Positions 9,654-47,662 of a DNA stretch of 64,000 bases are shown in pieces. How positions within the stretch are numbered: the first letter of the stretch is position 1; every line of letters begins with the position of its first letter. This DNA comes from Phyllobates terribilis (lineage: Eukaryota), in contig NW_027362767.1 of assembly GCF_046119375.1 (NCBI RefSeq), forward strand, positions 378,758,001 through 378,822,000. The letters are read 5' to 3'. The notes under the pieces were generated by a model. That model made no database searches, was not told where the DNA came from, and worked only from the letters and a program-made list of their open reading frames with translations. The position numbers and the translations under genes were made by a program.

Positions 9654-9897
9654 CAGGCTCGGACTGGCTCACGGGAGAACAGGAGAATCCTCCGGTGGAC
9701 CCCCATGCAGAAATGGGCTTTCCACTCTACCTATATGAGAAGTAGGTGGCACAGTACATTTGTTTCACTATGTTCAGAAAAGGGCATCATCTCAACCTAC
9801 ATTTAAGAAAATACCCTGTTTATTATTATATAGAAACACAGGCAAATTTGTGAATGAGGGTAATGTGATATTTGCATGTAGCTGAACAGTGGGACCC
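9654..9897. mobile_element. Second, 3'-truncated copy of the 6649-6926 hAT element
   Basis: caggctcggactggctcacgggagaacagg and gagggtaatgtgatatttgcatgtagctga align with 6649-6870. The copy ends where the satellite begins. Confidence 0.7.
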
Positions 9898-9904
9898 AGA
9901 TTCA

Positions 9905-11022
9905 ATTTACCATCAGTGTATCATCAGTATTTGGTCAGTGTCAGTATGTATCATCAGTATTTGGTCAATTTGGTCAGTGTCAGTATGTATCATCAGTATT
10001 TACCATCAGTGTTTCATCAGTATTTGGTCAGTGTCAGTATGTATCATCAGTATTTACCATCAGTGTTTCATCAGTATTTGGTCAGTGTCAGTATTTATCA
10101 TCAGTATTTGGCCAGTGTCAGTATGTATCATCAGTATTTACCATCAGTGTTTCATCAGTATTTGGTCAGTGTGAGTATTTACCATCAGTGTTTCATCAGT
10201 ATTCTGGTCAGTGTCAGTATTTATCATCAGTGCTTCATCAGTATTTGGTCAGTGTCAGTATTTACCATCAGTGTTTCATCAGTATTTGGTCAGTGTCAGT
10301 ATTTATCATCAGTATTTGGCCAGTGTCAGTATGTATCATCAGTATTTACCATCAGTGTTTCATCAGTATTTGGTCAGTGTCAGTATTTATCATCAGTATT
10401 TGGCCAGTGTCAGTATGTATCATCAATATTTACCATCAGTGTTTCATCAGTATTTGGTCAGTGTGAGTATTTACCATCAGAGTTTCATCAGTATTCTGGT
10501 CAGTGTCAGTATTTATCATCAGTGCTTCATCAGTATTTGGTCAGTGTCAGTATTTACCATCAGTGTTTCATCAGTATTTGGTCAGTGTCAGTATTTATCA
10601 TCAGTATTTGGCCAGTGTCAGTATGTATCATCAGTATTTACCATCAGTGTTTCATCAGTATTTGGTCAGGGTCAGTATTTACCATCAGTGTTTCATCAGT
10701 ATTTGGTCAGTGTCAGTATTTACCATCAGTGTTTCACCAGTATTTGGTCAGTGTCATTATTTACCATCAGTGTTTCACCAGTATTTGGTCAGTGTCCATA
10801 TTTACCATCAGTGTTTCATCAGTATTTGGTCAGTATTTACCATCAGTGTTTCACCAGTATTTGGTCAGTGTCAGTATTTACCATCAGTGTTTCATCAGTA
10901 TTTGGTCAGTGTCAGTATTTACCATCAGTATACCATCAGTATTTGGTCAGTGTCAGTATTTACCATCAGTATTTGGTCAGTGTCTGTGTATCATCAGTAT
11001 TTTGTCAGTATTTATCATCAGT
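9905..11022. repeat. Modular CATCAGT satellite (30-, 13- and 11-nt modules; 292-bp higher-order duplication)
   Basis: Modules catcagtatttggtcagtgtcagtatNtaN, catcagtatttac and catcagtgttt. The rare variants gtgagt and tattctgg recur exactly 292 bp apart (10171/10463; 10204/10496). Confidence 0.93.
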
Positions 11023-11327
11023 GAATAAATAAATTGGAAAGCCTCTCCGATACATTATAAATGTAAAAATGGACGTCACACTGATGACACACGGACGGCA
11101 ATGTGAGCTGTCTGTGATTTTTCACAGACTCAAAAACTTGTGTGGCTAATTTTGATCTATGATGTTGATAAAAAAAATCAGAAATCTTGATGATTTTTGC
11201 TCGGACACACGGTCCACAAAAAAACAAGGACAAGTGAATAGCCCTATAGACTATAATGGGTAAATGTTCTATCCGTGAAAATCATGGCTACAGCATGTAT
11301 GTGAAAAACGGATGTCTGAATGAGGCC
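11023..11327. mobile_element. Right end of a Harbinger-type non-autonomous element that hosts the satellite
   Basis: Ends gatgtctgaatgaggcc followed by TTA. The subterminal sequence matches 15370-15416. Left end not found. Confidence 0.5.
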
Positions 11328-15676: not shown

Positions 15677-17257
15677 CACTGCTCACAAAAATAAAGGGAA
15701 CACTGAAATAACACATCCTAGATCTGAATGAATGAAATATTCTCATTGAATATTTTGTTCTGTACAAAGTTGAATGTGCTCACAACAAAATCACACAAAA
15801 ATCATCAATGGAAATCAAATTTATTAACCAATGGAGGCCTGGATTTGGAGTCACCCCCAAAATTAAAGTGGAGAAACACACTACAGGCTGATCCAACTTT
15901 GATGTAATGTCCTTAAAACAAGTCAAATTGAGGCTCAGTATTGTGTGTGGCCTCCACGTGCCTGTATGACCTCCCTACAATGCCTGGGCATGCTCCTGAT
16001 GAGGTTGCAGATGGTCTCCTGTGAGATCTCCTCCCAGACCTGGACTAAAGCATCCGCCAACTCCTGGACAGTCTGTGGTGCAACGTGACCTTGGTGGATG
16101 GAGCGAGACATGATGTCCCAGATGTGCTCAGTCGGATTCTGGTCTGGGGAACGGGCGGGCCAGTCCATAGCTTCAATGCCTTCATCTTTCAGGAACTGCT
16201 GACACACTCCAGCCACATGAGGTCTGGCATTGTCCTGCATTAGGAGGAACCCAGGGCCAACCGCACCAGCATATGGTCTCACAAGGGGTCTGAGGATCTC
16301 ATCTCGGTACCTAATGGCAGTCCGACTACCTCTGGCGAGCACATGGCGGGCTGTGCGGCCCTCCAAAGAAATGCCACCCCACACCATTACTGACCTACTG
16401 CCAAACCGGTCATGCTAAAGGATGTTGCAGGCAGCAGATCACTCTCCACGGCGTCTCCAGACTCTGTCACGTCTGTCACATGTGCTCAGTGTGAACCTGC
16501 TTTCATCTGTGAAGAGCACAGGGCGCCAGTGGCGACTTTGCCAATCCTGGTGTTCTGTGGCAAATGCCAAGCGTCCTGCACGGTGTTGGGCTGTGAGCAC
16601 AACCCCCATCTGTGGACGTCGGGCCCTCATACCACCCTCATGGAGTCGGTTTCTAACCTTTTGTACAGACACATGCACATTTGTGGCCTGCTGGAGGTCA
16701 TTTTGCAGGGCTCTGGCAGTGCTCCTCCTGATCCTCCTTGCACAAAGGTGGAGGTAGCGGTCCTGCTGCAGAGTTGTTGCCCTCCTACGACCCCCTCCAT
16801 GTCTCCTGGTGTACTGGCCTGTCTCCTGGTAGCGCCTCCAGCCTCTGGACACTACGCTGACAGACACAGCAAACCTTCCTGCCACAGTTCGCATTGATGT
16901 GCCATCCTGGATGAGCTGCACTACCTGAGGAACTTCTGTGGGTTGTAGAGTCCGTCTCATGCTACCACGAGTGTGAAAGCACAACCAACATTCAAAAGTG
17001 ACCAAAACATCAGCCAGAAAGCATTGGTACTGAGGTGTGGTCTGTGGTCCCCACCTGCTGAACCACTCCTTTATTGAGGGTGTCTTGATAATTGCCAATA
17101 ATTTCCATCTATTGTCTATTCCATTTGCACAACAGCATGTGAAATTGATTGTCAATCAGTGTTGCTTCCTAAGTGGACAGTTTGATTTCACAGAAGTTTG
17201 ATTTACTTAGAGTTATAGTCTGTTGTTTAAGTGTTCCCTTTATTTTTTTGAGCAGTG
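15677..17257 (-). mobile_element. Tc1 transposon, DD34E, full length
   Basis: TA TSDs; TIR cactgctcacaaaaataaagggaacact...agtgttccctttatttttttgagcagtg. Confidence 0.95.
15935..16960 (-). pseudogene. Tc1 DD34E transposase with two in-frame nonsense codons
   Basis: MRRTLQPTE...VLFTDESRF...RRRGE*SAACNIL*HDRF...MQDNARPH...WPARSPDQNPTEH; D to E spacing 34. Confidence 0.92.
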
Positions 17258-17468: not shown

Positions 17469-17481
17469 ATGGTGTGTCCTG
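17469..17481 (+). CDS. NKPD1: NKPD1-like probable first coding segment (exon 17426..17481; MVCP+G)
   Basis: Acceptor ctcttttttctgcag, Kozak-like gacATGg, in-frame upstream TGA, donor G|GTAAGG in phase 1 matching the next exon. Confidence 0.6.
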
Positions 17482-20400
17482 GTAAGGAGACGTTTCATCC
17501 CTTTAATACTCATTTTTTTCTACTGCATTATTCATTATTCTGATACCCCCCCCACCCATTGCACAATACTCGCCCACACCAACCCTATTAATTCCTACAT
17601 AGTGTTAATATTCTGCAGCCATTAAATACATGTTATCTTATCGGCTGTATATTACCCCTCCGCTTATCTCCGCTCCCTTAATCATTACATACACACACAC
17701 CTAGTTTTCCATATAAATCCATGGATGATGCCATTACTTTTCTAACATTCTTTAACCTCTTCCTAACAGGAATTTTGTTCTCTTTTGACACTTTCATTAT
17801 TTCCTCCCCTTCTTCCAAGAGCCAGGCTCGTATATTTTTGAGCGGACGTGGCCATATGTGGGTTTATTTTTTAAAGGACAATTTGTAGTTTTGAATGACT
17901 TCTTTCACGTCACCATGTCATGTACTAAAAAACAGAAAAAGAATTCCAAGTGATGTGAAATGGTGAAAAAAAAATGCAATTCCGCCATTGTTTCTAGTTT
18001 TTACAGCATTCATTAGAATTCTTTAGGTTAATAATAAAAAAATGTATTGTCATTTTCTGAGCTCTGTAACTTTTTAATTTTCCAATTGATAAACCTGTAT
18101 GAGGGTTTATTTGTGGTGTGGCAAGCTGATGTACACTGTGTGCAGAATTATTAGGCAAGTTGTATTTTAGAGGATTATTTTTATTATTGATCAACAACTA
18201 TGTTCTCAATCAACCGAAAAGACTCATAAATATCAAAGCTTAATATTTTTGGAAGTTGGAGTGTTTTTTTTTTTTAGATTTGGCTATCTTAGGAGGATAT
18301 CTGTTTGTGCAGGTAACTATTACTGTGCCGAATTATTAGGCAACTTAATAAAAACCAAATATAATCCCATCTCACTTGTTTATTTTCACCAAGTAAACCA
18401 ATATCAGTGCACAAAATTTAGAAATAAACATTTCTGACATGCAAAAACAAAAAAAATTAGTGATCAGTATAGCCACCTTTCTTTATGACACTCAACAGCC
18501 TTCCATCCATAGATTCTGTCAGTTTCTTGATCTGTCTTCGATCAACATTGCGTGCAGCAGCCACCACAGCCTCCCAGACACTGCTCTGAGAGGTGTACTG
18601 TTTTCCCTCCCTGTAGATCTCACATTTTATGATGGACCACAGGTTCTCTATGGGGTTCAGATCAGGTGAACAAGGGGGCCATGTCATTATTTTTTCTTCT
18701 TTTAGACCTTTACTGGCCAGCCACGCTGTGGAGTAGTTGGATGCATGTGATGGAGCATTGTCCTGCATGAAAATCATGTTTTTCTTGAACGATATCGACT
18801 TCTTCCTGTACCACTGCTTGAAGAAGTTGTCTTCCAGAAACTGGCAGTAGGTCTGGGAGTTGCGCTTCACTCCATCCTCAACCCGAAAAGGTCCCACAAG
18901 TTCATCTTTGATGATACCAGCCCATACCAGTACCCCACCTCCACCTTGCTGGCGTCTGAGTCGGAGTGGAGCTCTCTGCCCCTTACTGATCCAGCCTCTG
19001 ACCCATCCATCTGGCCCATCAAGAGTCACTCTCATTTCATCAGTCCATAAAACCTTTGAAAAATCAGTCTTAAGATATTTCTTGGCCCATTCTTGACGTT
19101 TTATCTTATGTTTCTTGTTCAAAGGTGGTCGTTTTTCAGCCTTCCTTACCTTGGCCATGTCCCTGAGTATCGCACACCTTGTGCTTTTTGATACTCCAGT
19201 AACGTTGCAGCTCTGAAATATGGCAAAACTGGTGTCGAATGGCATCTTGGCAGCTTCACGCTTGATTTTCCTCAATTCATGGGCAGTTATTTTGCGCCTT
19301 TTTTGGCCAACACGCTTCTTGCGACCCTGTTGGCTATTTGCCATGAAACGCTTGATTGTTCGGTGATCACGCTTCAAAACTTTGGAAATTTCAAGACTGC
19401 TGCATCCCTCTGCAAGACATCTCACAATTTTGGACTTTTCAGAACCCGTCAAATCTCTCTTCTGACCCATTTTGCCAAAGGAAAGGAAGTTGCCTAATAA
19501 TTAAGCACACCTTATATAGAGTGTTGATGTCATTAGTCAACACCCCTCCTCATTACAGAGATGCACATCACCAGATTTACTTAATTGGTAGTTGGCTCTC
19601 AAGGCTATGCTGCTTGGAGTAGGACAACATGTAGAAAAAGTATTGAAGTGATCAAAATACGCATCTGCCTAATAATTCTGCACGCGGTGTATGTATTGCT
19701 ACCATGTTTCCATTCAATACGATGTTTTGATCACTCTGTAATACATTTTTTTGGGGGGGTATGGAAATAATAAAAACTGAAAAGCCAGAATTAATTTATC
19801 ACTGCGTTTACTGTATGGGTTAATTAATTTTTAGATTTCGTAGATTGAACTTTTATGGCAATACTAATTATGTTTTTTTTTATTTTATATTTTTGAACTG
19901 AGAAATGAACAGTGATTTATTTAAACTTTCGTATTCTTTTATTTTTAAGAACATTTTTTTGTTTTACTTTATTTTTTGCGTTGAGATTTGAATCTTGAAT
20001 TTGACAACACAATATTGGTCCAAGTGTGATCCGACAAAACATCAGATCGCACTGGGAAAAATGTTAATCTATGGGGCCACGCACATGTCCATTTTTTTTT
20101 CCTCAGACTGAGCCGATCTGAGGATAAAATTGTAGTATGTCTAAGTTTGATCTGATATTCGGATCACACTCGGCAATGCAAGTCAATGAATCTGTGGAAA
20201 CCATCGGACTGCACTCGGATGACATTTTCGCGCACTGACACAATGGAGAAGATGGAGAAATTTTGTTCTCCATCTTCTCCTCAGTGTGTTCTGACTGTCT
20301 CATCCAAGAAAATCAGATCACACTATGCTGACACTCTGATCTTAGTGTTATTGGCATAATTGACCCAATTCTCTCAGATGTGAGAATCTATAGTCGTGTG

Positions 20401-23400
20401 ACTCTGGCCTTAATGTATATAGGGACACTACCCAAGTGGTAACACCCAGTTGTCAATTTATTTATATTTATTGTAGAAGAAAAAAGCAGGGCAATGGTAC
20501 AACATAGAGGAGATGGGAAGGAGTGTATCAAGAAAGTTCTCTTATCTTCTCTGCGGTGGCTCCAATCTCCATACTGTCGCTGTTTTGAGGACCCATATGA
20601 CTGTGATGTCATTGGTCCTTCACCTGTTCTGGTCATGAAGGCAGGCATTTTGCAGGGCCAGCTGCATTTTTTTTTACAAATATGGCGCCCCCTGCTGTCA
20701 GGAAAGATTGTTGACTGAGGTGTAGTGCACCTCTCCTCGTGAATGATGCACCCTGGCTTATGAATGACATAGAGGAGGATCTCAGTTCATGGAACCTCCT
20801 CTATGAGCCATTGTGGGTAGCCGTTAAAGGGAATCTGTCACCAGAAAGCAGCCAATCAGTGGTGTGGGCGGAGTTATACAGAGCTCACCAATCAGAGAAC
20901 TGCTAGAGAAAACAGTGATTTTTATCAAAACCGCAGCAAACAGCCCAGTAAGTGACACATCATTGGGATCAGGGTCTCTGCCCCTATTTCATGTTGCTTT
21001 CAGAAGGAGTAGCAAAAACTTGGTGACAGATTCCCTTTAAGAATGGGCTGTTCGCATCTTGCAAGACCCAAATGTCCATATATTACACATTCAGGCATGT
21101 ATTACTACAGCTCACTAGGACGGATGTCAGAGAAGGCATTGTCTTATGGATATTTACTGTAAAAAAGGTCAGTATCGTCAGACCTGTACTCCTCCGGCAA
21201 ACACTAAGGCCTCATGCACACCGCCGTATCATGGGTTTGTATTATCTGGGTGGGCTCCTTTGCGTGGCACTGCCCTGTGCATTGGCACCAAGTGATAGTC
21301 TTTCTTGCTTTCATCCTTAAGGTTTTGAGACCAAAGATGACGTCTACTGTTACTCGCTGGCGAAAGCTTTGTATTATGTTGTATCCCCTGTGACGGTCGG
21401 GTTTTATGCTCCGTGGGGCAGACGCAAAGATTTCCTTCTCAACAAGGTCGAATGTGAGTAAATAGTTATAAGCCGATTCCTATCAATTTGCCATAAAATT
21501 GTTCTCTTAGGACATAATAATGGAAGAAGTCATTTCAATGTACAATCATGCAGCTATATTCGGACAATAAGACAGATTTGTACCACCATAAGGCTGCGGA
21601 CCCCCAGTAGATGTCTAATTCACCCCTTCTACAATATATCATTATAATTTGTATGATAGGGGGTGTCTGGTGCCTCCATCCTCCTCCGCTTCTGACATCA
21701 GGTGTCGAGAGCTGCTGCTATATGAGGGGGCGGGGCAATTTCCATGGCAACCATCTGGTTTCCTCGGCAACTGTCCCGCCCTTATACTGCAGCAGCTCTC
21801 CCCACCGGATGTGAGAACAGAGGCGCCAGCTAACCCTTGCAATCTAAATGCTTGATGAAGAAGATCAGACCCTTCTAGCTGTTATAACTACCTCTACATT
21901 ACTGGTAGATCTATGGCTTTTATCTGTACTTTATTTTTTCTTTTATTTAATTTACCAAGAAAATGCATTAAAATTAGACATAACATAAGTAAAAACCCCA
22001 ACTAATCTGATCCAACGCCAGCCAGAGTTGTAGCCATTGATAGAATTTGTCACAAACATAAAGATCAATCCAACCTGAGGTGTCACATTTCTAAAAAACA
22101 CATTTTATAAAAAAAAAAGTCTCTTAAAGGCCACTTTATGGCCCAAATGGTCTTCAAATTCATCTCCGGATATCATCCCTCCCAAAATGCTACGAGGTAG
22201 ACCATGATTTACTCTTTATTAATAAAGACATTAAGGCTGTGTGCCCACGATGCGTTTTTTAAGCGTTTTTGCAGCAGCAAAAACACTGCAGAAACGCTTA
22301 AAAAACGCTTGATAGAAGGTCTGCCATGTTCCCCAATGATAATCCGCATGTGCTGTGCACATGCTGCGGAAATTTCCGCTGCGAATTATCATTGCAGAAA
22401 AAAACGCAGCACTACCAATTATTTTGCGGAAGCGCTGCTTTTTCGCCGCCATTGACTTGCATGGAATCCGCATCACTGCATCTGTACATGCGGAATCCAA
22501 ACGTTTCAATGTGCGGATGGTGCCCGGGTCTGGAGAAGAGGAGACTCCTCCGGACCCGGGTCCATAGTACCTGTAAAAAAGGATAAAATAAAAAATAAAT
22601 ATTATACTTACCTTCTGATGGTCCCCGGTGCGCTTGTCTTCGCTTGCCAGCAGATCGCGGTGGACTGAAGGACCTGCGCTGATGTCCACCGCGATCTGCT
22701 GGCAAGCGAAGACAAGCGCACCGGGGACTATCAGAAGGTAGGTATAGTATTTATTTTTTATTTTATCCTTTTTTACAGGTACTATGGACCCGGGTCCGGA
22801 GGAGTCTCCTCTTCTCCAGACCCGGGCACCATCCGCACATTGAAACGTTTGGATTCCGCATGTACAGATGCAGTGATGCGGATTCCATGCAAGTCAATGG
22901 CGGCGAAAACGCAGCACTTCCGCAAAATAATTGGTAGTGCTGCGTTTTTTTCCGCAATGATAATTCGCAGCGGAAATTTCCGCAGCATGTGCACAGCACA
23001 TGCGGATTATCATTGGGGAACATGGCAGGCCTTCTACCATGTGTTTTTTAAGCGTTTCTGCAGCGTTTTTGCCGCTGCGGAAACGCTTAAAAAACGCATC
23101 GTGGGCACACAGCCTAAATGTTCATTTTTCAAAATAAAAAAGTAATTGACCCAAATAGTAAATAAAAGATTGAGGAAAAAATAAAAAAATGCCAGAATTG
23201 TATTTTTTTTCTCTAAAAAAAATTCAATAAAAAGCGATTAGAATGTTATATGCATCCCCCAAAAATTAAAAATATAAATGTAAAAAGTTAAAAAGTTAAG
23301 GGTCTAAGAAAATGGCGACACAAAACATTTTTTTTTTTTTTTTTTTTTTTTTTTAGTTTTCCATTTTTTTTAATCCCCCCCCCCAAAAAAATGATAAATG

Positions 23401-26400
23401 TTTGATTGATTTGTAATCATACTGACCAGGAAAATAATATTTCTGCACAATAAACACTGCACAATGAACACCATAGAGGTAAACCTCCCAAACACCGACA
23501 CCTGTATTTCGATATTGGCACCGTACAAATGAATATGGTGAACAGACACTGGTGGTGACATCATATTTTACATCTAAATTTCCTATAAATGTAGAAATTA
23601 ATTTTCCGCTGTGATTGCAGCATACCTCTGTCTCGAAGCATGGAAGAAAGAGAAAGAAGAAGTGGAGAGGACTGGACAACGGACAAGAAAATGCAAAGGA
23701 AAAGATCTCATCAAACTCATCTTTCTTATGATATTTTACCATCCGGTGATCACAGAAAAACACAAGCACAGAGAGAATATACGTTACTGCTTTATCCGCT
23801 TTAGTGCATGGGAATTTGCCGGCAGTGACCAACTTTGGGCTGGACTGGTTACCACACTCTGTGATGGTATTGAAAACTGCTTTGGACTTGCACCTATTAG
23901 TATCTATCGAGCGGTAGGCAGAAAAACCCAAATTATAGATGGTCCAATCAAGCACGAATGGGTTAGTAAGAAGTTCCTCTGTATCCCGCTTTGGGTTGCC
24001 ACTTTGCTGGTGATCTTCATTGCAATCACAGTGGGTGCCCTCATCCTGATATTTGGCTTTCCATTCGGTGACCCCGCCGGAGATATGTTGGCTGCCGCTG
24101 AAGGTGTTGGGGCAACCGTAGTTGGCCTGTCGGCGGCAGGAGCGATCAGAGTAGCGATTGTGGTGATCAGAAATGCCGTTGTGACTCAGAAAGGTAAAGT
24201 GGAACAAAAAATGAATCGAACCGATATGAGCTCCCAGTTGGGTTTCATGAGCGATGTGAAAAGGGAGGTTAAAATCATCACCCGTTACCTTCAACTCATG
24301 GAAATCTTCCAAAGACAAAAAATTAAAGTTGTACTTGAGATCACCAACTTGGACAGATGCATGCCAGACAAAGTGATAGGGGTCCTCAATGCCATGAATA
24401 TCCTTCTGTCTGATCCAAATGCCCCATTTATTTCCATTTTGGCCGTGGATCCTCATATCATCATAGATTGTGTTGAAAGCTCTCAGGTCTTGAAAGGAAT
24501 GGCCAACAACGGCTACCAGATCTTAAACCGCATAATCACGTTACCTTTTTGTATCCCAAAAATGGACTGTGACACTAAATTATCTATACTGAAAAATATT
24601 GTTGAAGGCAAAGGTGAGCTTGTTAGAGATACAGAAGAAGGTACCACATTGGAGAATGAGGCTTCAAATGAGAAAGACTACCTGATATACCAACAAACTG
24701 TCCCCAACACTGACCATAATACCAGTGATGACCCACTGACGGTAAGAAGCTCAAATGACGAGCACAACAGCTGTTTCCAAGAAAAAGGGCCAACGACAAA
24801 AAATCTAATAGACGAAGCCTTTGATTATCTTTTTGACGAGAGCATGAGGGACTATATCACTGACAACGTTGTTCATATCAGAAGGGTTGTAAATACTATT
24901 ACCATAACCATCAGACTGATGATCAGGGAAGTACCAAAAAGCCAAATACAACCTCGAAAAGTGACAGAATGGGTCCTCCTGGCTACCCAATGGCCGTGTC
25001 GTCTCAGCTGGATATTGCAGTGCATTGAGGACGAGCAACAGAGGAGATGCCTGAATGAACAAGAACCCAACAGTGAATATACTACATACTCCAGAACTTT
25101 CCTTTGGGATGTTTTTGAGAAGTCTTTGGAAGAGTTGGATGCTATGAAGGCTAGTCTAAATCGACTACTGGAGTTGGATGGAGATCCTGAGATCTTCCAC
25201 AATCTCTTATATGAGAACTTTACTGTGAAAGATGCCAACTTTTTCGTGCCATTCACTGTGAATTTAGATGTTTCTATTAAAAGACAAATGGAGCTTCTAA
25301 GAGGCAGTAACAATATGTGGGAATTAAAGAAAAGCAACCGGGTGACTATGCTGTCATTGCTGAACATGAGTGTGGAAGAGGTGTGCAAAGAGGTAAGTGT
25401 GGAGTTGTGTGTCAGTTACTTATTATTTGATATTAAAGGGGTTGTACGGGATTTGAAAAAAAAAAAAAACATGGCTGTTTTTTTTCTCCAAAAACAGAGC
25501 CACAATGGTGTACAGGTTGTGTATTGCAACTGTATCCTGTCTACTGTATTGGGAGAAAAAATTAGCCATGTTTTCAAGTTAAATCTTGAATATATTTCAT
25601 AGGAACTCCTCCTGCCATTCAATCCTCAAAAAAGTTTAGTGAGCTGGTCAGGCATTCCATGTTCTAGTGAGAGGTGCTGACGTTTTTGCCTACCACCATG
25701 CAACCTACCATTAAAAGGGTTTTCCTGGACTTTAATATTGTTAACATATCCATAGGCTAAGACAGACCTGGGCAAAGTGCAGCCCACAGGCCACATCCGG
25801 CCCCCTGGCTGTTCCAGTCCGGCTCGAGGACAGAGACAGCTGAAGGGCTGAAACTGTAGCCCACAGGCCGCACTGTGCCCTCCCCTGCCATCCGTCACCA
25901 CTTGCTGTCACAAGTATGTGGGGAACATGCTGTATATCAAAGGCTATGTAGGGCACATGCTGTACATGGGAGGCTATGTGAGGGCTCATACTGTATACAG
26001 GAGGCTATGTGGAGGCTCATACTGTATATAGGGGGGCTGTGTGCGGGCTCATACGGTATATAGGGGGATGCCAGCATATACTTAATTCTGCTCAATATTA
26101 AGTCATACAATTAATATTAATCTAAAATAATTATAATAATTAATATGGCAACATTCATATTGAGCAGAATTGATTTTAGCCTATTGGTATGGCCCTCCAC
26201 AACAGTCACGGTCTCTCATGTGGCCCCTCGGGAAAATTAAATGCCCACCCCTGGGCTAGGACATTAATGCCAGATCAGTGGGGATCAAGCTCCTAGCACC
26301 CACAACCTGATTGAAAAAGCCGTTGGGCACCCACAGAGTACTGTTCCGTACATTGTGTAGTGGCCATGACTGGTATTGCAAGCTTTTTTCTCATTCAATC

Positions 26401-29400
26401 ATTCCATTTTGGGGTGGCTAGAATCAGACTCCCACTGATCTGAAATTGATGACTCATACTAGTAAAAGTTCATCATTAGTAAAGTCCCAGAAAACCCCTT
26501 TAAAGTATTATTCCAAAAATCATAATGTGGTCTCAGTTTTCTGTACAAATAGACAATCATGTGTGCCAATACAACCTAATTTTAAATCTGCACTTATTTG
26601 CAGCTCTCGTTCCCCTAATGATGACTCCTCAGGGCTCTCATTAGCCATCATCAAGTAGTCCTAATGCTGTCGGTTGAGCATGCTCAGATGTAACTACTGA
26701 CTCTTTCTAAAAACATAATATCTGACAGCCAGGTTGTAGCACAGTTCAACTATGCTATGCTGATGATCAAACTGATACCAGCTGCATATGCACCTTATGA
26801 CCCTAAATAAAAAAAAACAGATGCACCTATGACCCTGTCTAATAAAACATTCTCCAGATCCTCATTGCCCTGACAGCCATGCTGTAGCACAGCCCAGCTA
26901 TTCTGTACTCAGCTCTGCTATACAGTGGGGAAAAAAAGTATTTAGTCAGCCACCAATTGTGCAAGTTCTCCCACTTAAAAAGGTGAGAGAGGCCTGTAAT
27001 TGACATCATAGGTAGACCTCAACTATGAGAGACAATATGAGAAAACAAATCCTGAAAATCACATTGTCTGATTTGGAAAGACATTTTTGTCAAATTTTGG
27101 TGGAAAATAAGTACCGTATTTTTCGGACCATAAGACGCACTTTTTTCCCCCCAAATTTGGAAGGAAAATGGGGGGTGCGTCTTATGGTCCGAACCTTACT
27201 TTACCGGTGGTGTTGGAGCGGGGATCGCAGGGTCCACCGGCGGCGGCAGAGGTGACATACGGCTGGAGCCGGGGTCTGTACCTGTGCTGGAGTGGCTGGT
27301 GAAGCTTTGGAGCCGGGGCCTGTGCCGGGCTGTGAGCAGCGTCCGGCGGTGAGGCAGAGGAGCCGGGGTCTGTGCCAGGCTGTGAGCGGCGTCCGATGGT
27401 GAGGCAGAGGAGTGTGTGCGGCACCCGGTGGCCATCTTCCTGAGGCCATGATCTACAGGAAAATGGCCGCCGGAGCCGGCGCATGTGCCGACCGGGAGCT
27501 TCGGCGGCCATTTTCCTGTAGTTCACGGCCTCAGGAAGAGGACCGGGTGCCGCACACGCTCCTCTTCCTCACCGCCGGACTCCGCTCACAGCCCGGCACA
27601 GACCCCGGCTCCTCTGCCTCACCGCTGGACGCCTCTTACAGACCCCAGCAGGAGACAGGGCCCAGTCAGACACCGGCCCCGCAACATTTCACCTCTTCTG
27701 CTGCCGCCGCCAAGTTCTTGAGGCAGGGAACAGAGGGACCTGCGATCCTGCTGCACTACCACCGCAACTCACAGCTGCTGGAGCACCAGCTTCATGTATC
27801 CAGGGTCCGCAGCATTCGTCCACTTCCGCCGGGTCGGTTTCCTGAAGGACCCAACCTCCTGTGACCCCCGCTTCACCACCCCCCAGGTAAGATACCGTAC
27901 CTATTCTGACTATAAGACGGACCCCATCTTATAAAAAAAATTTGGTTTCCTATTTTCCACCCCAAAATTTGGGGTGCGTCTTATGGTCCGGTGCGTCTTA
28001 TAGTCCGAAAAATACGGCATTTGGTCAATTACAAAAGTTCATCTCAATACTTTGTTATATATTCTTTGTTGGCAATGACAGAGGTCAAACGTTTTCTGTA
28101 AGTCTTCACAAGGTTGGCACACACTGTTGCTGGTATGTTGGCCCATTCCTCCATGCAGATCTCCTCTAGAGCAGTGATGTTTTGGGGCTGTCGCTGGGCA
28201 ACACAGACTTTCAACTCCCTCCAAAGATTTTCTATAGGGTTTAGATCTGGAGACTGGCTAGGCCACTCCAGGACCTTGAAATGCTTCTTACAAAGCCACT
28301 CTTTCGTTGCCCTGGCGGTGTGCTCGGGATCATTGTCATGCTGAAAGACCCAGCCACGTTTCATCTTCAATGCCCTTGCTGATGGAAGGAGGTTTGCACT
28401 CAAAATCTCACGATACATGGCCCCATTCATTCTTTCATGTCCAGGAACAGTCATCCTTGTCCCTTGGCAGAGAAACAGCCCCAAAGTATGATGTTGCCAC
28501 CCCCATGCTTCACAGTAGGTATGGTGTTTGGATGCAATTCGGCATTCTTTCTCCTCCAAACACGACGAGTTGTGTTTCTACCAAACAGTTCTACTTTGGT
28601 TTCATCGGACCATGTGACATTCTCCCAATACTCTTCTGGATCATCCAAATGCTCTCTAGCAAACTTCGGACGGGCCGGGACATGTAATGGCTTAAGCAGG
28701 GGGACGCGTCTGGCACTGCAGGATCTGAGTCCCTGGCGACGTAGTGTGTTACTGATGGTAGCCTGTGTAACGTTGGTCCCAGCTCTCTGCAGGTCATTCA
28801 CTATGCCCCCCGTGTGGTTCTGGGATTTTTGCTCACCGTTCTTCAGATCATTTTGATCCCACAGGGTGAGATCTTATGTGGAACCCCAGATCGAGGGAGA
28901 TTATCATTGGTCTTATATGTCTTCCATTTTCTAATTATCGCTGCTACAGTTGATTTCTTCCCACCAAGCTGCTTGCCTATTGCAGATTCAGTCTTCCCAG
29001 CCTGGTGCAGGGCTACAATTTTGTTTCTGGTGTCCTTGGACAGCTCTTTGGTCTTCACCATAGTGGAGTTTGGAGTGTGACTGTTTGAGGTTGTGGACAG
29101 GTGTCTTTTATACTGATAACAAGTTCAAACAGGTGCCAGTGCTACAGGTAATGAGTGGAGGACAGAGGAGCCTCTTAAAGAAGAAGTTACAGGTCTGTGA
29201 GAGCCAGAAATCTTACTTGTTTGTAATTGACCAAATACTTATTTTCCACCAAAATTTGGAAAAAAAAATACAAATCAGACAATGTGATTTTCAGGATTTG
29301 TTTTCTCATTTTGTCTCTCATAGTTGAGGTCTACCTATCATGTCAATTACAGACCTCTCTCATCTTTTTAAGTGGGAGAACTTGCACAATTGGTGGCTGA

Positions 29401-32400
29401 CTAAATACTTCTTTTCCCCCACTGTATATGCAGAGAACATTATGCTATGAAGATCCCCATGAACAATCAATGAAATGTGAACTTTGTAAAAAGCCATGAA
29501 TATTGGTCAAATAGTGGATCACAGTTACTACACTAAAAAAAACTACCAATGGCCACCTCATCCATATAAATACAAATTGCCTGTGTTGAGATCTGTCTCT
29601 ATCAGGAAGCACAGATGAGAGCAGAGGATGGGGCCTTCAGCACTGAGGAACAGCGGGGTGCTGCCTGGAAATGTAGATTTAGCAGATAAGAATAGGAACA
29701 GTCAATCAGCTCTACAAAGCTAGATGCACAGGGGGGCAGATGGAGATGAAAAAAAGGTACAAGAAAGAAACTTTATGGTGGGCCTGTACTGTATGTTAAA
29801 TTGGTTATCCAGCCTAAAGGCCCCGTCACACATAACGAGATCGCTAGCGAGATTGCTAATGAGTCACAGTTTTGGTGACGCAATAGCGATCTCGCTAGCG
29901 ATCTCGTTATGTGTGACGGGGCCTTTAAGGTACAAGTCTGCAGTCATTCTATGTGACTGCAGACTTGTGAAGACGCACATCTCGTGTACTGCACGCTGAA
30001 AGGATTCTCTGGTGCGGGGAGATATGCGATAGTATATAAGCGGTCACGTGCTGACTAGACGTAATGTATTGAGCGAGTCCGGACACGTCTAGTCGGAATG
30101 TGCCTGGAAATATGCAAACCGCATACTTGTGGTCACGTGACCGCCCACTCCTGGAGAACGCTTACAGCTTGCAGACTTGTACCCGAAGGTCGAACAACCC
30201 CTTTAACAATAGACATGCAGATACTTAGATTTCTAAAAGAATATTTCCATTATGGAAATAACCTTTTAAATTAAAGTCAATTTGCCATCTCTGCTGTAAA
30301 AGTGAAGCTCTTGATGCTACTGTTTTAGGGAGAACTTCTTACCAGCTTCCCAAGAACACCAGATGTCCAAGGAATCTTGGTTGGGATATATATATTTACA
30401 ACAATGTTGAGACCCCTATTTGACGTACAGTACAGACCAAAAGTTTGGACACACCTTCTCATTTAAAGATTTTTCTATATTTTCATGACTATGAAAATTG
30501 TACATTCACACTGAAGGCATCAAAACTATGAATTAACACATGTGGAATTATATACTTAACAAAAAAGTGTGAAACAACTGAAAATATGTCTTATATTCCA
30601 GGTTCTTCAAAGTAGCCACCTTTTGCTTTGATGACTGCTTTGTACACTCTTGGCATTCTCTTGATGAGCTTCAAGAGGTAGTCACCGGAAATGGTTTTCA
30701 CTTCACAGGTGTGCCCTGTCAGGTTTAAAAAGTGGGATTTCTTGCCTTATAAATGGGATTGGGACCATCAGTTGTGTTGTGCAGAAGTCTGGTGGATACA
30801 CAGCTGATAGTCCTACTGAATAGACTGTTAGAATTTGTATTATGGCAAGAAAAAAGCAGCTCAGTAAAGAAAAACGAGTGGCCATTATTACTTTAAGAAA
30901 TGAAGGTCAGTCAGTGCGAAAAATTGGGAAACCTTTGAAAGTGTCCCCAAGTGCAGTTGCAAAAACCATCGAGCACTACAAAGAAACTGGCTCACATGAG
31001 GACCGCCCCAGGAAAGGAAGACCAAGAGTCACCTCTGCTTCTGAGGATAAGTTTATCCGAGTCACCAGCCTCAGACATCGCAGGTTAACAGCAGCTCAGA
31101 TTAGAGACCAGGTCAATGCCACACAGAGTTCTAGCTGCAGACACATCTCTACAACAACTGTTAAGAGGAGACTTTGTGCAGCAGGCCTTCATGGTAAAAT
31201 AGCTGCTAGGAAACCACTGCTAAGGACAGGCAACAAGCAGAAGAGACTTGTTTGGGCTAAAGAACACAAGGAATGGACATTAGACCAGTGGAAATTTGTG
31301 CTTTGGTCTGATGAGTCCAAATTTGAGATCTTTGGTTACAACCAACGTGTCTTTGTGCGACGCAGAAAAGGTGAACGGATGGACTCTACATGCCTGGTTC
31401 CCACCGTGAAGCATGGAGGAGGAGGTGTGATGGTGTGGGGGTGCTTTGCTGCTGACACTGTTGGGGATTTATTCAAAATTGAAGGCATACTGAACCAGCA
31501 TGGCTACCACAGCATCTTCAGCGGCATGCTATTCCATCCGGTTTGCGTTTAGTTGGACCATCATTTATTTTTCAACAGGACAATGACCCCAAACACACAT
31601 CCAGGCTGTGTAAGGGCTATTTGACCAAGAAGGAGAGTGATGGGGTGCTACGCCAGATGACCTGGCCTCCACAGTCACCAGACCTGAACCCAATCGAGAT
31701 GGTTTGGGGTGAGCTGGACCGCAGAGTGAAGGCAAAAGGGCCAACAAGTGCTAAGCATCTCTGGGAACTCCTTCAAGATTGTTGGAAGACCATTTCCGGT
31801 GACTACCTCTTGAAGATCATCAAGAGAATGCCAAGAGTGTGCAGAGCAGTCATCAAAGCAAAAGGTGGCTACTTTGAAGAACCTAAAATATAAGACATAT
31901 TTTCAGATGTTTCACACATTTTTGTTAAGTATATAATTCCACACGTGTTAATTCATAGTTTTGATGCCTTCAGTGTGAATGTACAATTTTCATAGTCATG
32001 AAAATACAGAAAAATCTTTAAATGAGAAGGTGTGTCCAAACTTTTGGTCTGTACTGTATATGTTGGGAAATGCCCCTGATGCGTATATCCAACTTATGTA
32101 ACTATGCCATGCAGTTGCATATGTAGCTCATTGGCCCCTATATACCATCTCAGCGGACAGCAAAAGTACACTCTTGGCATCTCTCTTGATGAGATCCAGA
32201 CCATTGATGTTTCAAATAGCACAAATAGCCCATAAATGAAGCCTACCCAGTTATAGTTTATCTTTGTATACCCTTCTATTTTCCAATGTAAAATTAAGGA
32301 CGAAAATGATAACCCAAGGGACTAGATTATTTCCCCCTACAACCTAGCTGTCCTATATTGGAGATAGTCTTCTGTTTTACGTAAATTTTAGGTAATATAT

Positions 32401-32791
32401 TAAAACACAAACCTGTTATGACCCGCCCCTGAGGAGCGGAGACTCAAGTGTAACACTTATATTTTCTTCTCTTTAGATGAACAAACTAGGATTTCGGGAT
32501 GAGAACCTTCAACACTATAAGCGGAAGATTAAGGACCACAACCTAAACGGCAGAGCTCTTGTATACAGTGATAATAATGAGATAAAAGATGTGTTGTGTA
32601 TGGGTCTCGGAGACTGGACACTTTTCAGCGTGTACTTCCTAGGGGTGCTCCCTCCACCTCCTGCTGTTCCTGCAACTGCCCCAGTGATTGGCAAGCAAGA
32701 AGCTACAAAACTCGGGGCTGTATCCAAAGAGAATATATTAAAAAAGAGCAAGATATCTCTGTATTTATCAGACGATGATATTCTCTCTTAA
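17469..32791 (+). CDS. NKPD1: NKPD1-like KAP-family P-loop NTPase with two TM segments and a C-terminal SAM-like domain; join(17469..17481,21322..21453,23621..25392,32477..32791), 743 aa
   Basis: Motifs [68 protein letters not shown] and FTVNLD match NKPD1. All introns are GT-AG with compatible phases, total 2232 nt. The start exon is less certain; ortholog versus paralog is unresolved. Confidence 0.88.
18134..19689 (-). mobile_element. Tc1-like DD37E (TRT family) transposon, full length, intronic
   Basis: TA TSDs; TIR cactgtgtgcagaattattaggca...tgcctaataattctgcacgcggtg; internal repeats of the TIR core at about 18323 and 19490. Confidence 0.95.
18457..19470 (-). CDS. DD37E transposase, uninterrupted 337-aa ORF
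   Basis: [15 protein letters not shown] and [12 protein letters not shown] motifs; 37 residues between the second D and the E. Confidence 0.92.
   Translation of the reverse strand: MGQKRDLTGSEKSKIVRCLAEGCSSLEISKVLKRDHRTIKRFMANSQQGRKKRVGQKRRKITAHELRKIKREAAKMPFDTSFAIFQSCNVTGVSKSTRCAILRDMAKVRKAEKRPPLNKKHKIKRQEWAKKYLKTDFSKVLWTDEMRVTLDGPDGWVRGWISKGQRAPLRLRRQQGGGGVLVWAGIIKDELVGPFRVEDGVKRNSQTYCQFLEDNFFKQWYRKKSISFKKNMIFMQDNAPSHASNYSTAWLASKGLKEEKIMTWPPCSPDLNPIENLWSIIKCEIYREGKQYTSQSSVWEAVVAAARNVDRRQIKKLTESMDGRLLSVIKKGGYTDH
20828..21036. mobile_element. Kolobok/T2-type MITE
   Basis: TTAA|agggaatctgtcacca...tggtgacagattccct|TTAA. Confidence 0.88.
21322..21453 (+). CDS. NKPD1: NKPD1-like exon with the degenerate Walker A region
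   Basis: [43 protein letters not shown]; pyrimidine tract plus AAG acceptor, GTGAGT donor, phase 1-1. Confidence 0.9.
22235..23114. mobile_element. 880-bp foldback Harbinger-type element (431-bp arms, 18-nt loop)
   Basis: TAA TSD on both sides; ggctgtgtgcccacgatgcg...cgcatcgtgggcacacagcc; arms 22235-22665 and 22684-23114 are near-perfect complements. Confidence 0.93.
23621..25392 (+). CDS. NKPD1: NKPD1-like large exon (KAP domain, TM helices, start of SAM)
   Basis: Acceptor ttgcag|ca, donor GAG|GTAAGT. Open frame with KAP motifs and hydrophobic segments at about 23974-24170. Confidence 0.93.
25763..26253. mobile_element. hAT-Charlie-type non-autonomous element with internal tandem repeats
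   Basis: cagacctgggcaaagtgcagccc...gcccacccctg; TSD ggctaaga/ggctagga; about 30-bp repeats aggctatgtg...ctcatactgtata. Confidence 0.8.
26923..29424 (-). mobile_element. Tc1 DD34E transposon with long (about 200-bp) TIRs, left TIR interrupted by a nested element
   Basis: TA TSDs; cagtggggaaaa...ttttccccactg; frameshifted transposase 28044-29061 ([30 protein letters not shown]). Confidence 0.93.
27114..28017. mobile_element. Tc2/pogo-type non-autonomous element inserted at a TA in the Tc1 TIR
   Basis: ccgtatttttcggaccataagacgcac...gtgcgtcttatagtccgaaaaatacgg. The host TIR aataagTAtttggtc is rejoined on removal (right TSD reads CA). Confidence 0.85.
29818..29924. mobile_element. About 105-bp Harbinger-type hairpin MITE nested in a Kolobok-like MITE (about 29800-30202)
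   Basis: aggccccgtcacacataacgagatcgctagcgag...ctcgctagcgatctcgttatgtgtgacggggcct; TAA/TTA flanks. Confidence 0.75.
30428..32056 (+). mobile_element. Tc1-like DD38E (Intruder family) transposon, full length, about 270-bp TIRs
   Basis: TA TSDs; cagtacagaccaaaagtttggacac...gtgtccaaacttttggtctgtactg. Confidence 0.95.
30842..31893 (+). pseudogene. DD38E transposase with a single frameshift near 31515-31545
   Basis: [12 protein letters not shown]...WSDESKFE then QQDNDPKH...[12 protein letters not shown]; 38 residues between D and E. Confidence 0.9.
32477..32791 (+). CDS. NKPD1: NKPD1-like last coding exon (SAM-like domain plus Pro-rich tail)
   Basis: Acceptor ttcttctctttag| in phase 0; [16 protein letters not shown]...MGLGDWTLF resembles the KIDINS220 SAM. 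Confidence 0.85.
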   Translation: MNKLGFRDENLQHYKRKIKDHNLNGRALVYSDNNEIKDVLCMGLGDWTLFSVYFLGVLPPPPAVPATAPVIGKQEATKLGAVSKENILKKSKISLYLSDDDILS

Positions 32792-33152
32792 GTTCTGTTC
32801 CAAACATTTCACATTTTCTTTGAATTCCTAATAGAATCAACAGTCTGATAAAGAGACATCCAATTTACCCTAAAGCGTATTTCCGCCCAAAATTAAAAAT
32901 GCTCATATATTATAAAAATCAGACGTTTTTCTAGCAGCCACAGTTAAGTAATAATGTTTTCTTAGATTCAGAGACATAGCCATTTTAGGTTTTGTTGCGG
33001 AAGACATTTTCATGAACGCTAAGTGCAACCATATTGGTTATACTGTATTTCTGCATCAGCTCATTGGATAATGATAACTAAGGCTAGGGAATGCAAGATA
33101 GTTGTTCTCGTTACAGAATTTCAGATTTCAGCAGAATCCACTTTCAGACAAT

Positions 33153-33158
33153 AATAAA
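33153..33158 (+). terminator. Candidate polyadenylation signal for the NKPD1-like gene
   Basis: AATAAA about 360 nt after the stop codon; position only. Confidence 0.35.
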
Positions 33159-33474
33159 CTGTTTTACGTAAGACAAACATTATCTACATCATCTTAACAT
33201 AAGGGATTACAGGAAAACCATGAAAAAACAACCAGAGAGGTCATACAATATAGTCCAAAACACAATGGCAACTGCTGTCTACTAATGATAGTACCTCCAT
33301 AGTATAAGCCTGCAGCTGTTGTATGTGCCAACTCCTCATCTCAACAGCTAAGGTTTAGACCAATAGCTCTACCCTCATGATCATCTGGGAAAGTCTCTCT
33401 TTGAAATCAGTAAAAGTATCCATGATGGCTTGTGGATGTTCTCTGAACTTTGCCTTTAGAGTGTTCCTTTAGGT

Positions 33475-33636
33475 CAGGGTTCCCCAACTCCAGTCCTGAA
33501 GAGCCACCAACAGGTCATGTTTTCAGGATTTCCTTAGTATTGCTCAGGTGATTACTCCATCACCTGTGCAATACGAAGGAAATCCTGAAAGCATCACCTG
33601 TTGGTGGCTCTTCATTACCGGAGTTGGGGAACACTG
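33475..33636. mobile_element. Palindromic hAT MITE (162 bp)
   Basis: cagggttccccaactcc...ggagttggggaacactg; TSD ctttaggt/ctttagat. Confidence 0.85.
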
Positions 33637-33903
33637 CTTTAGATTATCATGTCTATTTCTTTCACATTTTCCTCTTTCATCTGATAAAAGTCCAACCAGT
33701 TTCTGCCTTGAGATGTTTCTCTTTTCTTCTTTCATCTTATCTACCAAGCTTTGTCTCTGCAGTTTTAACTGTTTCACCTTCTTTTCTATGCCTTCTGATT
33801 TTTCCTCCTTCTTCCACGGATCTGCTTTATTTTTCATGATTGTCTTTATATTTCTCATCAGCCTTCATCCATTTATTGGCTTCCTCTTCTGAGAGTTGAG
33901 ATA

Positions 33904-40071: not shown

Positions 40072-40626
40072 TCAGATCCTAATCTCAGGCAGTAAGTTAC
40101 AGCTGGTTATTATGTCAATCTTCTCCGACACCCCTTTCAAGTCATCAAGAGCGAGTCTGATATTGTGGGACGCATTAATGATTGCATTCTGGGAGTTGCT
40201 CAGTTGAGCCGTCAGTGTCCGGATCTCATTAGTGGTCGTATGGTAGACCTGCCGGATGGTGGTGTTGACATCGTGGTAAAGACGAGCATTGCTTTCCAGC
40301 AGTTTTTGCTGTAGCAACGTGCTGTAGCGTCCTGCTTGCTGTATATTGACAATAGGCTTTTCTTCAAAACTAACGGGAGAACTTTCTCCTTCATTCCTGA
40401 TGACCACTAATGGAGGAAGATCCTTCTCTAAACACATGGAAGGAGTCTTATTTTTCTTAATGTCTTCATCATCCTCTTCATCGGTCTCTGAGGCTTCTCC
40501 TTGGATTTTTACACCACATGTACCAGAAACTGATCTTGTTGGGACAGAAGTCACATACATCTCCTCTTCGTCATCAGTTTCAGAAGCTTCCCCCTTTATG
40601 ATTGTTTGGAAACCTTGAGAAGACAT
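40072..40626 (-). CDS. BLOC1S3: Biogenesis of lysosome-related organelles complex 1 subunit 3, single coding exon, 184 aa
   Basis: Duplicated GEASETD motifs, DLPPLVV, LLQQKLLESNARLYHDV and KIDIITSCNLLPEI match BLOC1S3. Acceptor ttctctattctcag lies 10 nt upstream of the ATG (exon starts 40636). Confidence 0.95.
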   Translation of the reverse strand: MSSQGFQTIIKGEASETDDEEEMYVTSVPTRSVSGTCGVKIQGEASETDEEDDEDIKKNKTPSMCLEKDLPPLVVIRNEGESSPVSFEEKPIVNIQQAGRYSTLLQQKLLESNARLYHDVNTTIRQVYHTTTNEIRTLTAQLSNSQNAIINASHNIRLALDDLKGVSEKIDIITSCNLLPEIRI

Positions 40627-46599: not shown

Positions 46600-47662
46600 T
46601 TATATTCTAGGTTCTTCAAAGTAGCCACCTTTTGCTTTGATGACTGCTTTGCACACTCTTGGCATTCTCTTGATGAGCTTCAAGAGGTAGTCACCGGAAA
46701 TGGTCTTCCAACAATCTTGAAGGAGTTCCCAGAGATGCTTAGCACTTGTTGGCCCTTTTGCCTTCACTCTGCGGTCCAGCTCACCCCAAACCATCTCGAT
46801 TGGGTTCAGGTCTGGTGACTGTGGAGGCCAGGTCATCTGGCGTAGCACCCCATCACTCTCCCTCTTGGTCAAATAGCCCTTACACAGCCTGGAGGTGTGT
46901 TTGGGGTCATGGTCCTGTTGAAAAATAAATGATGGTCCAACTAAACACAAACCGGATGGAATAGCATGCTGCTGCAAGATGCTGTGGTAGCCAGGCTGGT
47001 TCAGTATGCCTTCAATTTTGAATAAATCCCCAACAGTGTCACCAGCAAAGCACCCCCACACCATCACACCTCCTCCTCCATGCTTCACGGTGGGAACCAG
47101 GCATGTAGAGTCCATCCGTTCACCTTTTCTGCGTCGCACAAAGACACGGTGGTTGGAACCAAAGATCTCAAATTTGGACTCATCAGACCAAAGCACAGAT
47201 TTCCACTGGTCTAATGTCCATTCCTTGTGTTCTTTAGCCCAAACAAGTCTCTTCTGCTTGTTGCCTGTCCTTAGCAGTGGTTTCCTAGCAGCTATTTTAC
47301 CATGAAGGCCTGCTGCACAAAGTCTCCTCTTAACAGTTGTTGTAGAGATGTGTCTGCTGCTAGAACTCTGTGTGGCATTGACCTGGTCTCTAATCTGAGC
47401 TGCTGTTAACCTGCGATTTCTGAGGCTGGTGACTCGGATAAACTTATCCTCAGAAGCACAGGTGACTCTTGGTCTTCCTTTCCTGGGACGGTCCTCATGT
47501 GAGCCAGTTTCTTTGTAGCGCTTGATGGTTTTTGCAACTGCACTTGGGGACACATTCAAAGTTTGCCCAATTTTTCAGACTGACTGACCTTAATTTCTTA
47601 AAGTAGTGATGGCCACTCGTTTTTCTTTACTTAGAATTTGTATTATGGCAAGAAAAAAGCAG
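46600..47662 (-). pseudogene. DD38E transposase; body open, but the start codon is removed by a 28-bp inversion
   Basis: ORF 46600-47559 is near-identical to 30842-31893; ATGGCAAGAAAAAAGCAG appears on the opposite strand at 47645-47662. Confidence 0.88.

Follow-up and report, generated by a model that had tools for sequence, protein, structure and literature searches.

A dendrobatid-frog NKPD1-like gene joins a KAP domain to a KIDINS220-type SAM domain

We analyzed a 64,000-nucleotide stretch of the genome of the frog Phyllobates terribilis (assembly GCF_046119375.1, contig NW_027362767.1, positions 378,758,001 to 378,822,000; the window hereafter), which carries the dendrobatid-frog ortholog of the vertebrate gene called "NKPD1-like" by NCBI. 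The gene was located by tblastn with P0001, the annotated, 743-aa Ranitomeya variabilis "NTPase KAP family P-loop domain-containing protein 1-like" (NKPD1-like), and then by reading of the sequence; its coding sequence has 743 codons in four coding exons (A-D) on the plus strand. The protein consists of a KAP domain with a predicted transmembrane hairpin, a SAM domain, and a short proline-rich, acidic tail.

Results

Gene structure and splicing

The features of the gene, in window coordinates, are as follows.

17469-17481, plus strand: exon A, first coding exon (coding part only), ATGGTGTGTCCTG; donor GTAAGG at 17482
21322-21453, plus strand: exon B, N-terminal part of the KAP domain; acceptor AG at 21320-21, donor GTGAGT at 21454
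23621-25392, plus strand: exon C, bulk of the KAP_NTPase domain, C-terminal helical region, and first 14 SAM residues; acceptor AG at 23619-20, donor GTAAGT at 25393
25393-32476, plus strand: intron C-D, 7084 bases; donor GTAAGT, acceptor AG at 32475-76
32477-32791, plus strand: exon D, beginning ATG AAC AAA after a pyrimidine-rich ...tctttAG; TAA stop at 32789-32791
32633-32791, plus strand: C-terminal tail with the proline run LPPPPAVP and the acidic end LSDDDILS (translation; 91% identical to the P0001 tail)
32792-33533, plus strand: 3' untranslated region, at least to 33533 (RNA contigs unbroken from 32475 to 33491-33533 in three runs)

Exon A reads ATG GTG TGT CCT G, i.e., M V C P and the first base of a Gly codon, and its peptide agrees with the P0001 N-terminus, MVCPGFE (pattern match and sequence). 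A start of exon B at 21321 was tried and rejected: the pattern derived from it, ATGGTNTGYCCNGT, was unmatched, the acceptor AG occupies 21320-21, and only the first base of the Gly codon belongs to exon A. By tblastn, exon B is 100% identical to P0001 residues 5-48 and exon C 94-95% identical to residues 47-641; the helical region of exon C closes with ...FTVNLD..., before the SAM domain starts. A possible acceptor (...ctgcAG) is present at 17424-25, 5' of exon A, and a 5' untranslated exon may sit upstream of it. The sequence-only reading, made from the letters of the window, had joined 25392 to 32477 and proposed a 743-aa product; its coordinates and exon D peptide were exact, and its length matches the full gene model.

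Exon C ends with ATG AGT GTG GAA GAG GTG TGC AAA GAG at 25392, followed by GTAAGT. RNA evidence for the junction was drawn from four public runs (recorded as "RNA?") of two studies, whose contigs were placed on window positions 32250-33650, i.e., the acceptor side. Each run contained one 2.2-3.2 kb contig whose match starts at 32475, extending in three of the four runs for ~1 kb through exon D and the 3' untranslated region, and no run of either study had contig depth on the intron side (32250-32474). All junction contigs carry one identical, 30-letter loose end, TGAACATGAGTGTGGAAGAGGTGTGCAAAG, which equals window positions 25361-25390, and the AG that follows it fits 25391-92 as well as 32475-76. 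Since the loose end and the shared AG together make up the end of exon C, the contigs read GTGTGCAAAGAG followed directly by ATGAACAAAC, a splice to 32477. The contigs lack the 7-kb intron in runs that comprise 80-150 million letters, and they are therefore transcript assemblies; one has ~2107 letters before the join, which fits exons A-C plus ~205 letters of 5' untranslated region. P0001 has the identical junction (...VEEVCKE joined to MNKLGF). Use of the exon C-D junction in transcripts, as the sequence-only reading had predicted, is thus confirmed by donor, acceptor, RNA contigs, and ortholog alike.

Exon D opens with ATG, stands alone as a 104-codon open reading frame (91% identity to its P0001 counterpart), and lies 7 kb from the KAP exon, so that it could be taken for a chance frame or a part of another transcript. 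This explanation is already refuted, however, since RNA contigs connect exon D to exon C, orthologs share the same join, and exon D alone has a significant domain match.

A KIDINS220-type SAM domain split by the intron

The domain is encoded in two pieces.

25351-25392, plus strand: SAM N-terminal piece, 14 residues, with the short first helix and most of the next helix
32477-32632, plus strand: SAM C-terminal piece (PF23307 match on exon D alone)

Exon D by itself matched Pfam family PF23307, SAM_KIDINS220 (E 6e-12; 45.7 bits, with the cut-off at 27; profile positions 25-70 of 90), and P0001 matched it over residues 626-691 (E 2.2e-14, 53.5 bits, same cut-off), in agreement with the SAM assignment of the sequence-only reading. 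No SAM match in Pfam came from the final 80 or 164 residues encoded by exon C, because a 14-residue piece of the domain is too short to score alone. When a profile was made from 35 homologous C-terminal regions, its best sequence match in the PDB was the Polyhomeotic SAM domain (E 9e-4). An AlphaFold2 model of P0001 residues 618-704, built with 35 homologs, had a mean pLDDT of 87, with early helices at residues 8-12 and 16-23 of this segment, the second of which is cut by the intron. Foldseek searches of the PDB with this model returned SAM domains for nearly all of the top 45 matches (probability 0.9-1.0, rmsd 2-3 A), including those of Scm, Ph, SAMD1, L3MBTL3, Hyphen, CNK, DGK-delta, and Shank. 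Pfam, profile search, and predicted fold therefore support the view that the end of exon C and exon D encode a KIDINS220-type SAM domain.

The KAP domain and its Walker motifs

Three features lie within the KAP domain.

21399-21431, plus strand: degenerate Walker A equivalent, APWGRRKD, in exon B (motif table)
23995-24168, plus strand: two hydrophobic, 19-residue segments (Kyte-Doolittle windows 2.98 and 2.13)
24328-24360, plus strand: Walker B equivalent, VVLEITNLD (hmmalign columns across 80 proteins)

KAP_NTPase (PF07693) matched exon C alone (E 9e-18, 65 bits; gathering cut-off 20) and P0001 with 82 bits (cut-off 20) over profile positions 7-292 of 293. In NCBIfam there was only a sub-threshold match to QatA, a bacterial KAP ATPase, which adds nothing new. 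A membrane insertion within the NTPase domain is typical of KAP proteins, and the two hydrophobic segments, judged by hydropathy only, sit between the Walker A and Walker B equivalents, where they form a predicted transmembrane hairpin. Such a hairpin would leave both flanks, and hence the SAM domain, on the same (cytoplasmic) side of the membrane, as in KIDINS220.

Both Walker motifs are degenerate. In place of [AG]x4GK[ST] the window has APWGRRKD (KIDINS220, A.WGSGKS), and a Thr stands where Walker B has its acidic residue (VVVDGLD in KIDINS220, LIIDDID in the tunicate homolog). Across 80 proteins aligned with hmmalign, the canonical motifs are kept by the KIDINS220 rows (WGSGKS and VDGLD) and by a tunicate NKPD1-like protein (WGTGKS and IIDDID), and GK[ST] and the Walker B aspartate are lost in all jawed-vertebrate NKPD1 and NKPD1-like rows, the former Walker positions drifting among vertebrate lineages (GSGIN, GCRLH, SCPRRI). 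Alternatively, the protein could still be a working NTPase with non-canonical nucleotide binding, the SAM domain only localizing or regulating it; in keeping with this, the Pfam profile is matched over nearly its whole length, and frogs retain the Walker A lysine (RRKD). Given the failed Walker A pattern, the change of the Walker B Asp to Thr, and the free drift of both sites in vertebrates while KIDINS220 and the tunicate homolog conserve them, we regard this alternative as unlikely. With both motifs degenerate, a membrane-anchored scaffold is the most likely role, and the family name "P-loop NTPase" may mislead.

Paralogy and distribution of the SAM domain

Word-index searches showed that tetrapods hold two gene types: NKPD1-like, with PF23307 and PF07693 (~740-770 residues), and NKPD1 with PF07693 only (NKPD1 proper hereafter). 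By precomputed Pfam assignments the former occurs in frogs, salamanders, turtles, crocodilians, lizards, and platypus, and the latter in caecilians, salamanders, frogs, turtles, crocodilians, birds, platypus, marsupials, and placentals; many species carry both genes, often on one chromosome-sized contig. We built a tree of the KAP domain from 80 rows in quick search mode, with KIDINS220 as outgroup and P0001 standing for the window protein. P0001 fell within a tetrapod NKPD1-like clade of 25 rows (100% support), and NKPD1 proper formed a tetrapod-only, SAM-less clade on a long stem, from amphibians to mammals (100% support). All other lineages of the tree include SAM-bearing members: a tunicate (Phallusia), lamprey, hagfish, chimaera, lungfish, coelacanth, the tetrapod NKPD1-like genes and, among ray-finned fishes, a bichir relative, sturgeon, gar, bowfin, eel, and other teleosts. 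In the free tree NKPD1 proper lay outside all bony-vertebrate SAM-bearing genes; an approximately unbiased test did not reject a tetrapod-only clade, i.e., duplication on the tetrapod stem (p 0.152).

No credible SAM match was found in NKPD1 proper, either in 10 proteins of nine lineages (frog, platypus, whale, seal, monkey, opossum, finch, and alligator among the sequences) or with a family-specific SAM hidden Markov model (HMM) run over all 163 collected proteins. Two candidates were rejected. In the tail of Xenopus tropicalis NKPD1 proper (P0120) the home-made HMM gave 29.5 bits, which is a compositional match to a charged, low-complexity segment; this tail lacks the pattern of a hydrophobic core and has no match in Pfam. 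The HMM match of P0101 is a platypus NKPD1-like gene read into an intron.

Since the tunicate, cyclostomes, chimaera, and fishes carry the SAM domain, the SAM-bearing state is the older one in the NKPD1 family and the human-type gene is derived. Tetrapod NKPD1 proper has lost the domain, and this SAM-less paralog is the one that humans keep. From the sequences collected, placentals and birds appear to lack the SAM-bearing copy, and the loss seems specific to these groups, not to mammals generally: SAM-bearing NKPD1-like genes are present in the wallaby Notamacropus eugenii (P0169, P0312, P0313) and the bilby Macrotis lagotis (P0166). These marsupial genes are fast-evolving, with the SAM domain intact and a small insertion after the intron-split helix. 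The position of wallaby P0169 inside the frog paralog clade of the KAP tree, on a 2.5-unit branch, was treated as a long-branch artefact; its SAM domain groups with those of tetrapod and coelacanth NKPD1-like. Among cartilaginous fishes, both chimaera genes have the domain, and annotated NKPD1 of sharks and rays (P0075, P0077, P0079, P0080, P0083, P0122, P0124, P0129) stops 15-25 residues past ...LLLGSR, where the SAM domain would begin; this truncation may be a real loss or a missed last exon.

The window gene might instead be the direct ortholog of human NKPD1, mammals having lost the SAM exon or failing to annotate it. NCBI indeed names many SAM-bearing fish genes simply "NKPD1", and the window gene lies in the BLOC1S3/TRAPPC6A neighborhood. 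However, frogs, salamanders, caecilians, turtles, crocodilians, and platypus each hold a SAM-less NKPD1 together with a SAM-bearing NKPD1-like gene, NKPD1 proper is a clade of its own with 100% support that includes amphibians, and bear NKPD1 lies on the TRAPPC6A side while the window gene lies on the other side of BLOC1S3. Direct orthology is thus largely refuted, and we give it very little credence. The sequence-only reading had called the protein NKPD1-like and compared it with human NKPD1; the family holds, and within it the gene is a paralog of the human gene, not its ortholog. Its suggested survey of homologs bore out the expected contrast: the SAM domain is found in fish, amphibian, reptile, platypus, and marsupial NKPD1-like, and the therian, bird, reptile, and amphibian sequences of NKPD1 proper that were tested have a low-complexity tail in its place, as the sequence-only reading had it for the human protein.

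Relationship to KIDINS220

Searched against 1.84 billion representative proteins, the SAM profile gave 276 matches at E<=1e-3, and it is therefore specific to this SAM subtype. The matches other than NKPD1-like were proteins of 1,700-2,000 residues with the SAM domain at ~1,150-1,350, composed by Pfam of Ank repeats, KAP_NTPase, and SAM_KIDINS220 and named KIDINS220 at source (donkey, amphioxus, mites, scorpion, and others). KIDINS220 proteins can be aligned from one end to the other with an HMM made from the NKPD1 KAP region. The SAM domain of donkey KIDINS220 is 37% identical to the frog-type SAM over 70 residues (E 2e-13), and they share the pattern MSV..VC ... NxNGRxL ... M..GDW.LF, which the sequence-only reading had given accurately. 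Ank families had no match at E<=1 on P0001 or the window exons, versus 1e-60 to 1e-108 for the KIDINS220 rows.

In a tree of SAM domains only, one branch (100/99 support) splits all NKPD1-like SAMs from all KIDINS220 SAMs, protostome sequences included. As this is congruent with the KAP tree, the SAM domain was inherited with the KAP domain and not recently shuffled in, and the comparisons indicate that the KAP+SAM module is common to NKPD1-like and KIDINS220 by descent. The competing view, that exon shuffling brought in the SAM exon secondarily from KIDINS220 and the architectures are convergent, could draw on the placement of the domain in its own exon behind a long intron and on a similarity to KIDINS220 (37%) that is high for a pair of SAM domains. 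Yet the intron cuts within the domain and not at its edge, tunicate, lamprey, hagfish, chimaera, and bony-vertebrate members have the domain, and NKPD1-like SAMs form one group that is not nested beside vertebrate KIDINS220 (100/99), with the same split in the KAP tree; capture is accordingly very improbable. An ancestral KAP-transmembrane-SAM architecture, i.e., KIDINS220 without ankyrins, had also been proposed from the sequence alone. It stands within the NKPD1 family, where the SAM-bearing state is older; relative to KIDINS220, the ankyrin-less form may have come first or may be a duplicate of KIDINS220 that was trimmed, since the tree has no root outside the two groups.

Neighboring genes and repeats

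Two genes were recognized downstream of NKPD1-like, placed head to head.

40072-40626, minus strand: BLOC1S3, single-exon (Pfam E 3.8e-61)
~54.7-55.0 kb, plus strand: TRAPP-component exon, probably TRAPPC6A, in the open reading frame 54588-55085 (Pfam E 8e-10)

The grizzly bear genes run in the order PPP1R37, NKPD1, TRAPPC6A, BLOC1S3, EXOC3L2 (PMC12693532). Relative to BLOC1S3, frog NKPD1-like is thus on the EXOC3L2 side, and mammalian NKPD1 is on the TRAPPC6A side, a placement that fits a local duplication flanking the BLOC1S3-TRAPPC6A pair, with frog NKPD1 proper outside the window.

Remnants of Tc1/mariner transposases are the main repeats recognized.

28044-29061, minus strand: Sleeping-Beauty-like remnant in intron C-D (Pfam HTH_SB, HTH_Tnp_Tc3_2, DDE_3)
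30842-31893, plus strand: Sleeping-Beauty-like remnant in intron C-D (Pfam HTH_SB, HTH_Tnp_Tc3_2, DDE_3)
15935-17155, minus strand: remnant (Pfam)
18457-19470, minus strand: remnant (Pfam)
46600-47559, minus strand: remnant (translation of open reading frame)
63103-63990, minus strand: remnant (translation of open reading frame)

The first two justify the earlier description of intron C-D as filled with transposable elements. The other four are located in the first intron and downstream, and the pair 18457-19470 and 63103-63990 consists of near-copies from one family. A very high-copy element occupies 33472-33612 in the 3' untranslated region, where summed contig depth jumps 10- to 100-fold with many short, unrelated contigs; at 33487, 33492, and 33500 the gene's own transcript contigs have A>G differences, which could be allelic or the result of RNA editing. 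Upstream of the gene, a long, imperfect, minisatellite-like tandem array runs from 9889 to 11032 (plus strand), and all three plus-strand frames repeat ...SVSIYHQCFISIW.... Intron B-C contains a large inverted repeat (22204-23145), probably a foldback or MITE-like element, whose open reading frames at 22326-22586 (plus) and 22763-23023 (minus) encode nearly identical, 86-residue peptides.

Discussion

We are confident, on the joint evidence, that the window carries an NKPD1-like ortholog with a KAP domain, a hairpin, and an inherited SAM domain, that it is a paralog of NKPD1 proper, and that its product is a probable scaffold. In such a protein, nucleotide hydrolysis would no longer be performed, and a cytoplasmic SAM domain and proline-rich tail would be presented to partners, the SAM contacts serving self-association or partner binding. 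By analogy with other SAM domains, SAM-mediated oligomerization of NKPD1-like is plausible. More tentatively, and as a possibility we would not favor at present, jawed-vertebrate NKPD1 and NKPD1-like may all be pseudo-NTPase scaffolds descended from a KIDINS220-like KAP+SAM ancestor, of which the SAM-bearing copy self-assembles in membranes by way of its SAM domain and was lost in placentals and birds, so that humans have only the SAM-less copy with its diverged tail. If so, this would give the first functional handle on human NKPD1, which is uncharacterized.

Several points weigh against these interpretations. The whole-protein domain searches, the structural model, and the trees used the 95%-identical ortholog P0001, with the window exons searched separately. 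The reading of the junction rests on acceptor-side contigs, and read-through past 25393 (where an in-frame stop follows at 25600-25602), intron retention, or a SAM-less isoform may also occur. The lack of SAM-bearing NKPD1-like in placentals and birds, and of the SAM domain in sharks and rays, holds for the protein-database searches made, genome scans not being among them. Loss of hydrolysis is read from the motifs only, and the lysine of Walker A is still there in the frog sequence. Oligomerization is a property of SAM domains as a class, and for this subtype it is an analogy only. What the SAM domain does in KIDINS220 itself has been described as incompletely understood (PMC12558908).

The architecture is already known at the level of annotation: PF23307 and PF07693 are precomputed for dozens of orthologs, and UniProt names some fragments "KIDINS220-like SAM domain-containing protein". 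The sequence-only reading had the domain hidden by the 7-kb intron that splits it; in public data it is not hidden, as Gnomon models and precomputed Pfam matches already show it. We found no paper discussing the KAP+SAM architecture of NKPD1-like; in the literature searched, NKPD1 came up only in gene lists of genetic and expression studies and was absent from the titles and abstracts of the best-ranked matches, and none of the papers retrieved that combine KIDINS220, SAM domain, and KAP was, by its title, about NKPD1. The added value of the present analysis is modest and comes from the pattern of paralogy and loss, from the synteny, and from the decay of the motifs. It indicates that humans keep only the derived, SAM-less paralog of an older, KIDINS220-related KAP+SAM protein; the loss of the SAM domain in the human copy and the decayed P-loop shift the focus to scaffolding and partner binding over nucleotide hydrolysis, and frog, fish, or marsupial genes are better entry points to the family.

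Comparison with known systems

The closest system is NKPD1-like of Ranitomeya variabilis (P0001), the same gene in another dendrobatid, which has the same length, junction, and Pfam pair as the window gene and no substantive difference from it. NKPD1 proper resembles the window gene in ~40% identity across the KAP domain to ...TVNLD.SIK..M.LLRG, in the same degenerate Walker motifs, and in the same neighborhood. However, after ...LRGxNNLQxxW it continues as a charged, low-complexity tail with no SAM match at E<=1, where the window gene has its SAM domain. The polymerizing SAM domains of Polyhomeotic, Scm, SAMD1/L3MBTL3, DGK-delta, and Shank share the helical bundle (TM 0.6-0.75, normalized to target), but their identity to the frog SAM is only 12-21%, and polymerization is not implied by the resemblance.

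KIDINS220 (ARMS) has the same succession of a KAP domain with a membrane insertion and a SAM domain of the same subtype (PF23307). It differs in its N-terminal ankyrin repeats, for which the frog protein has no matches, in the spacing from the end of the KAP domain to the SAM domain (~100-130 residues, ~20 in the frog), and in its four hydrophobic segments, where the frog protein has two. Its Walker A and B motifs are canonical and those of the frog protein degenerate. Beyond the SAM domain KIDINS220 continues for ~500 residues, whereas the window gene encodes only ~50, ending ...LSDDDILS, and so is without a long C-terminal region of the KIDINS220 type. KIDINS220 also carries a proline-rich region, a kinesin-interacting motif, and a PDZ ligand (PMC12558908).

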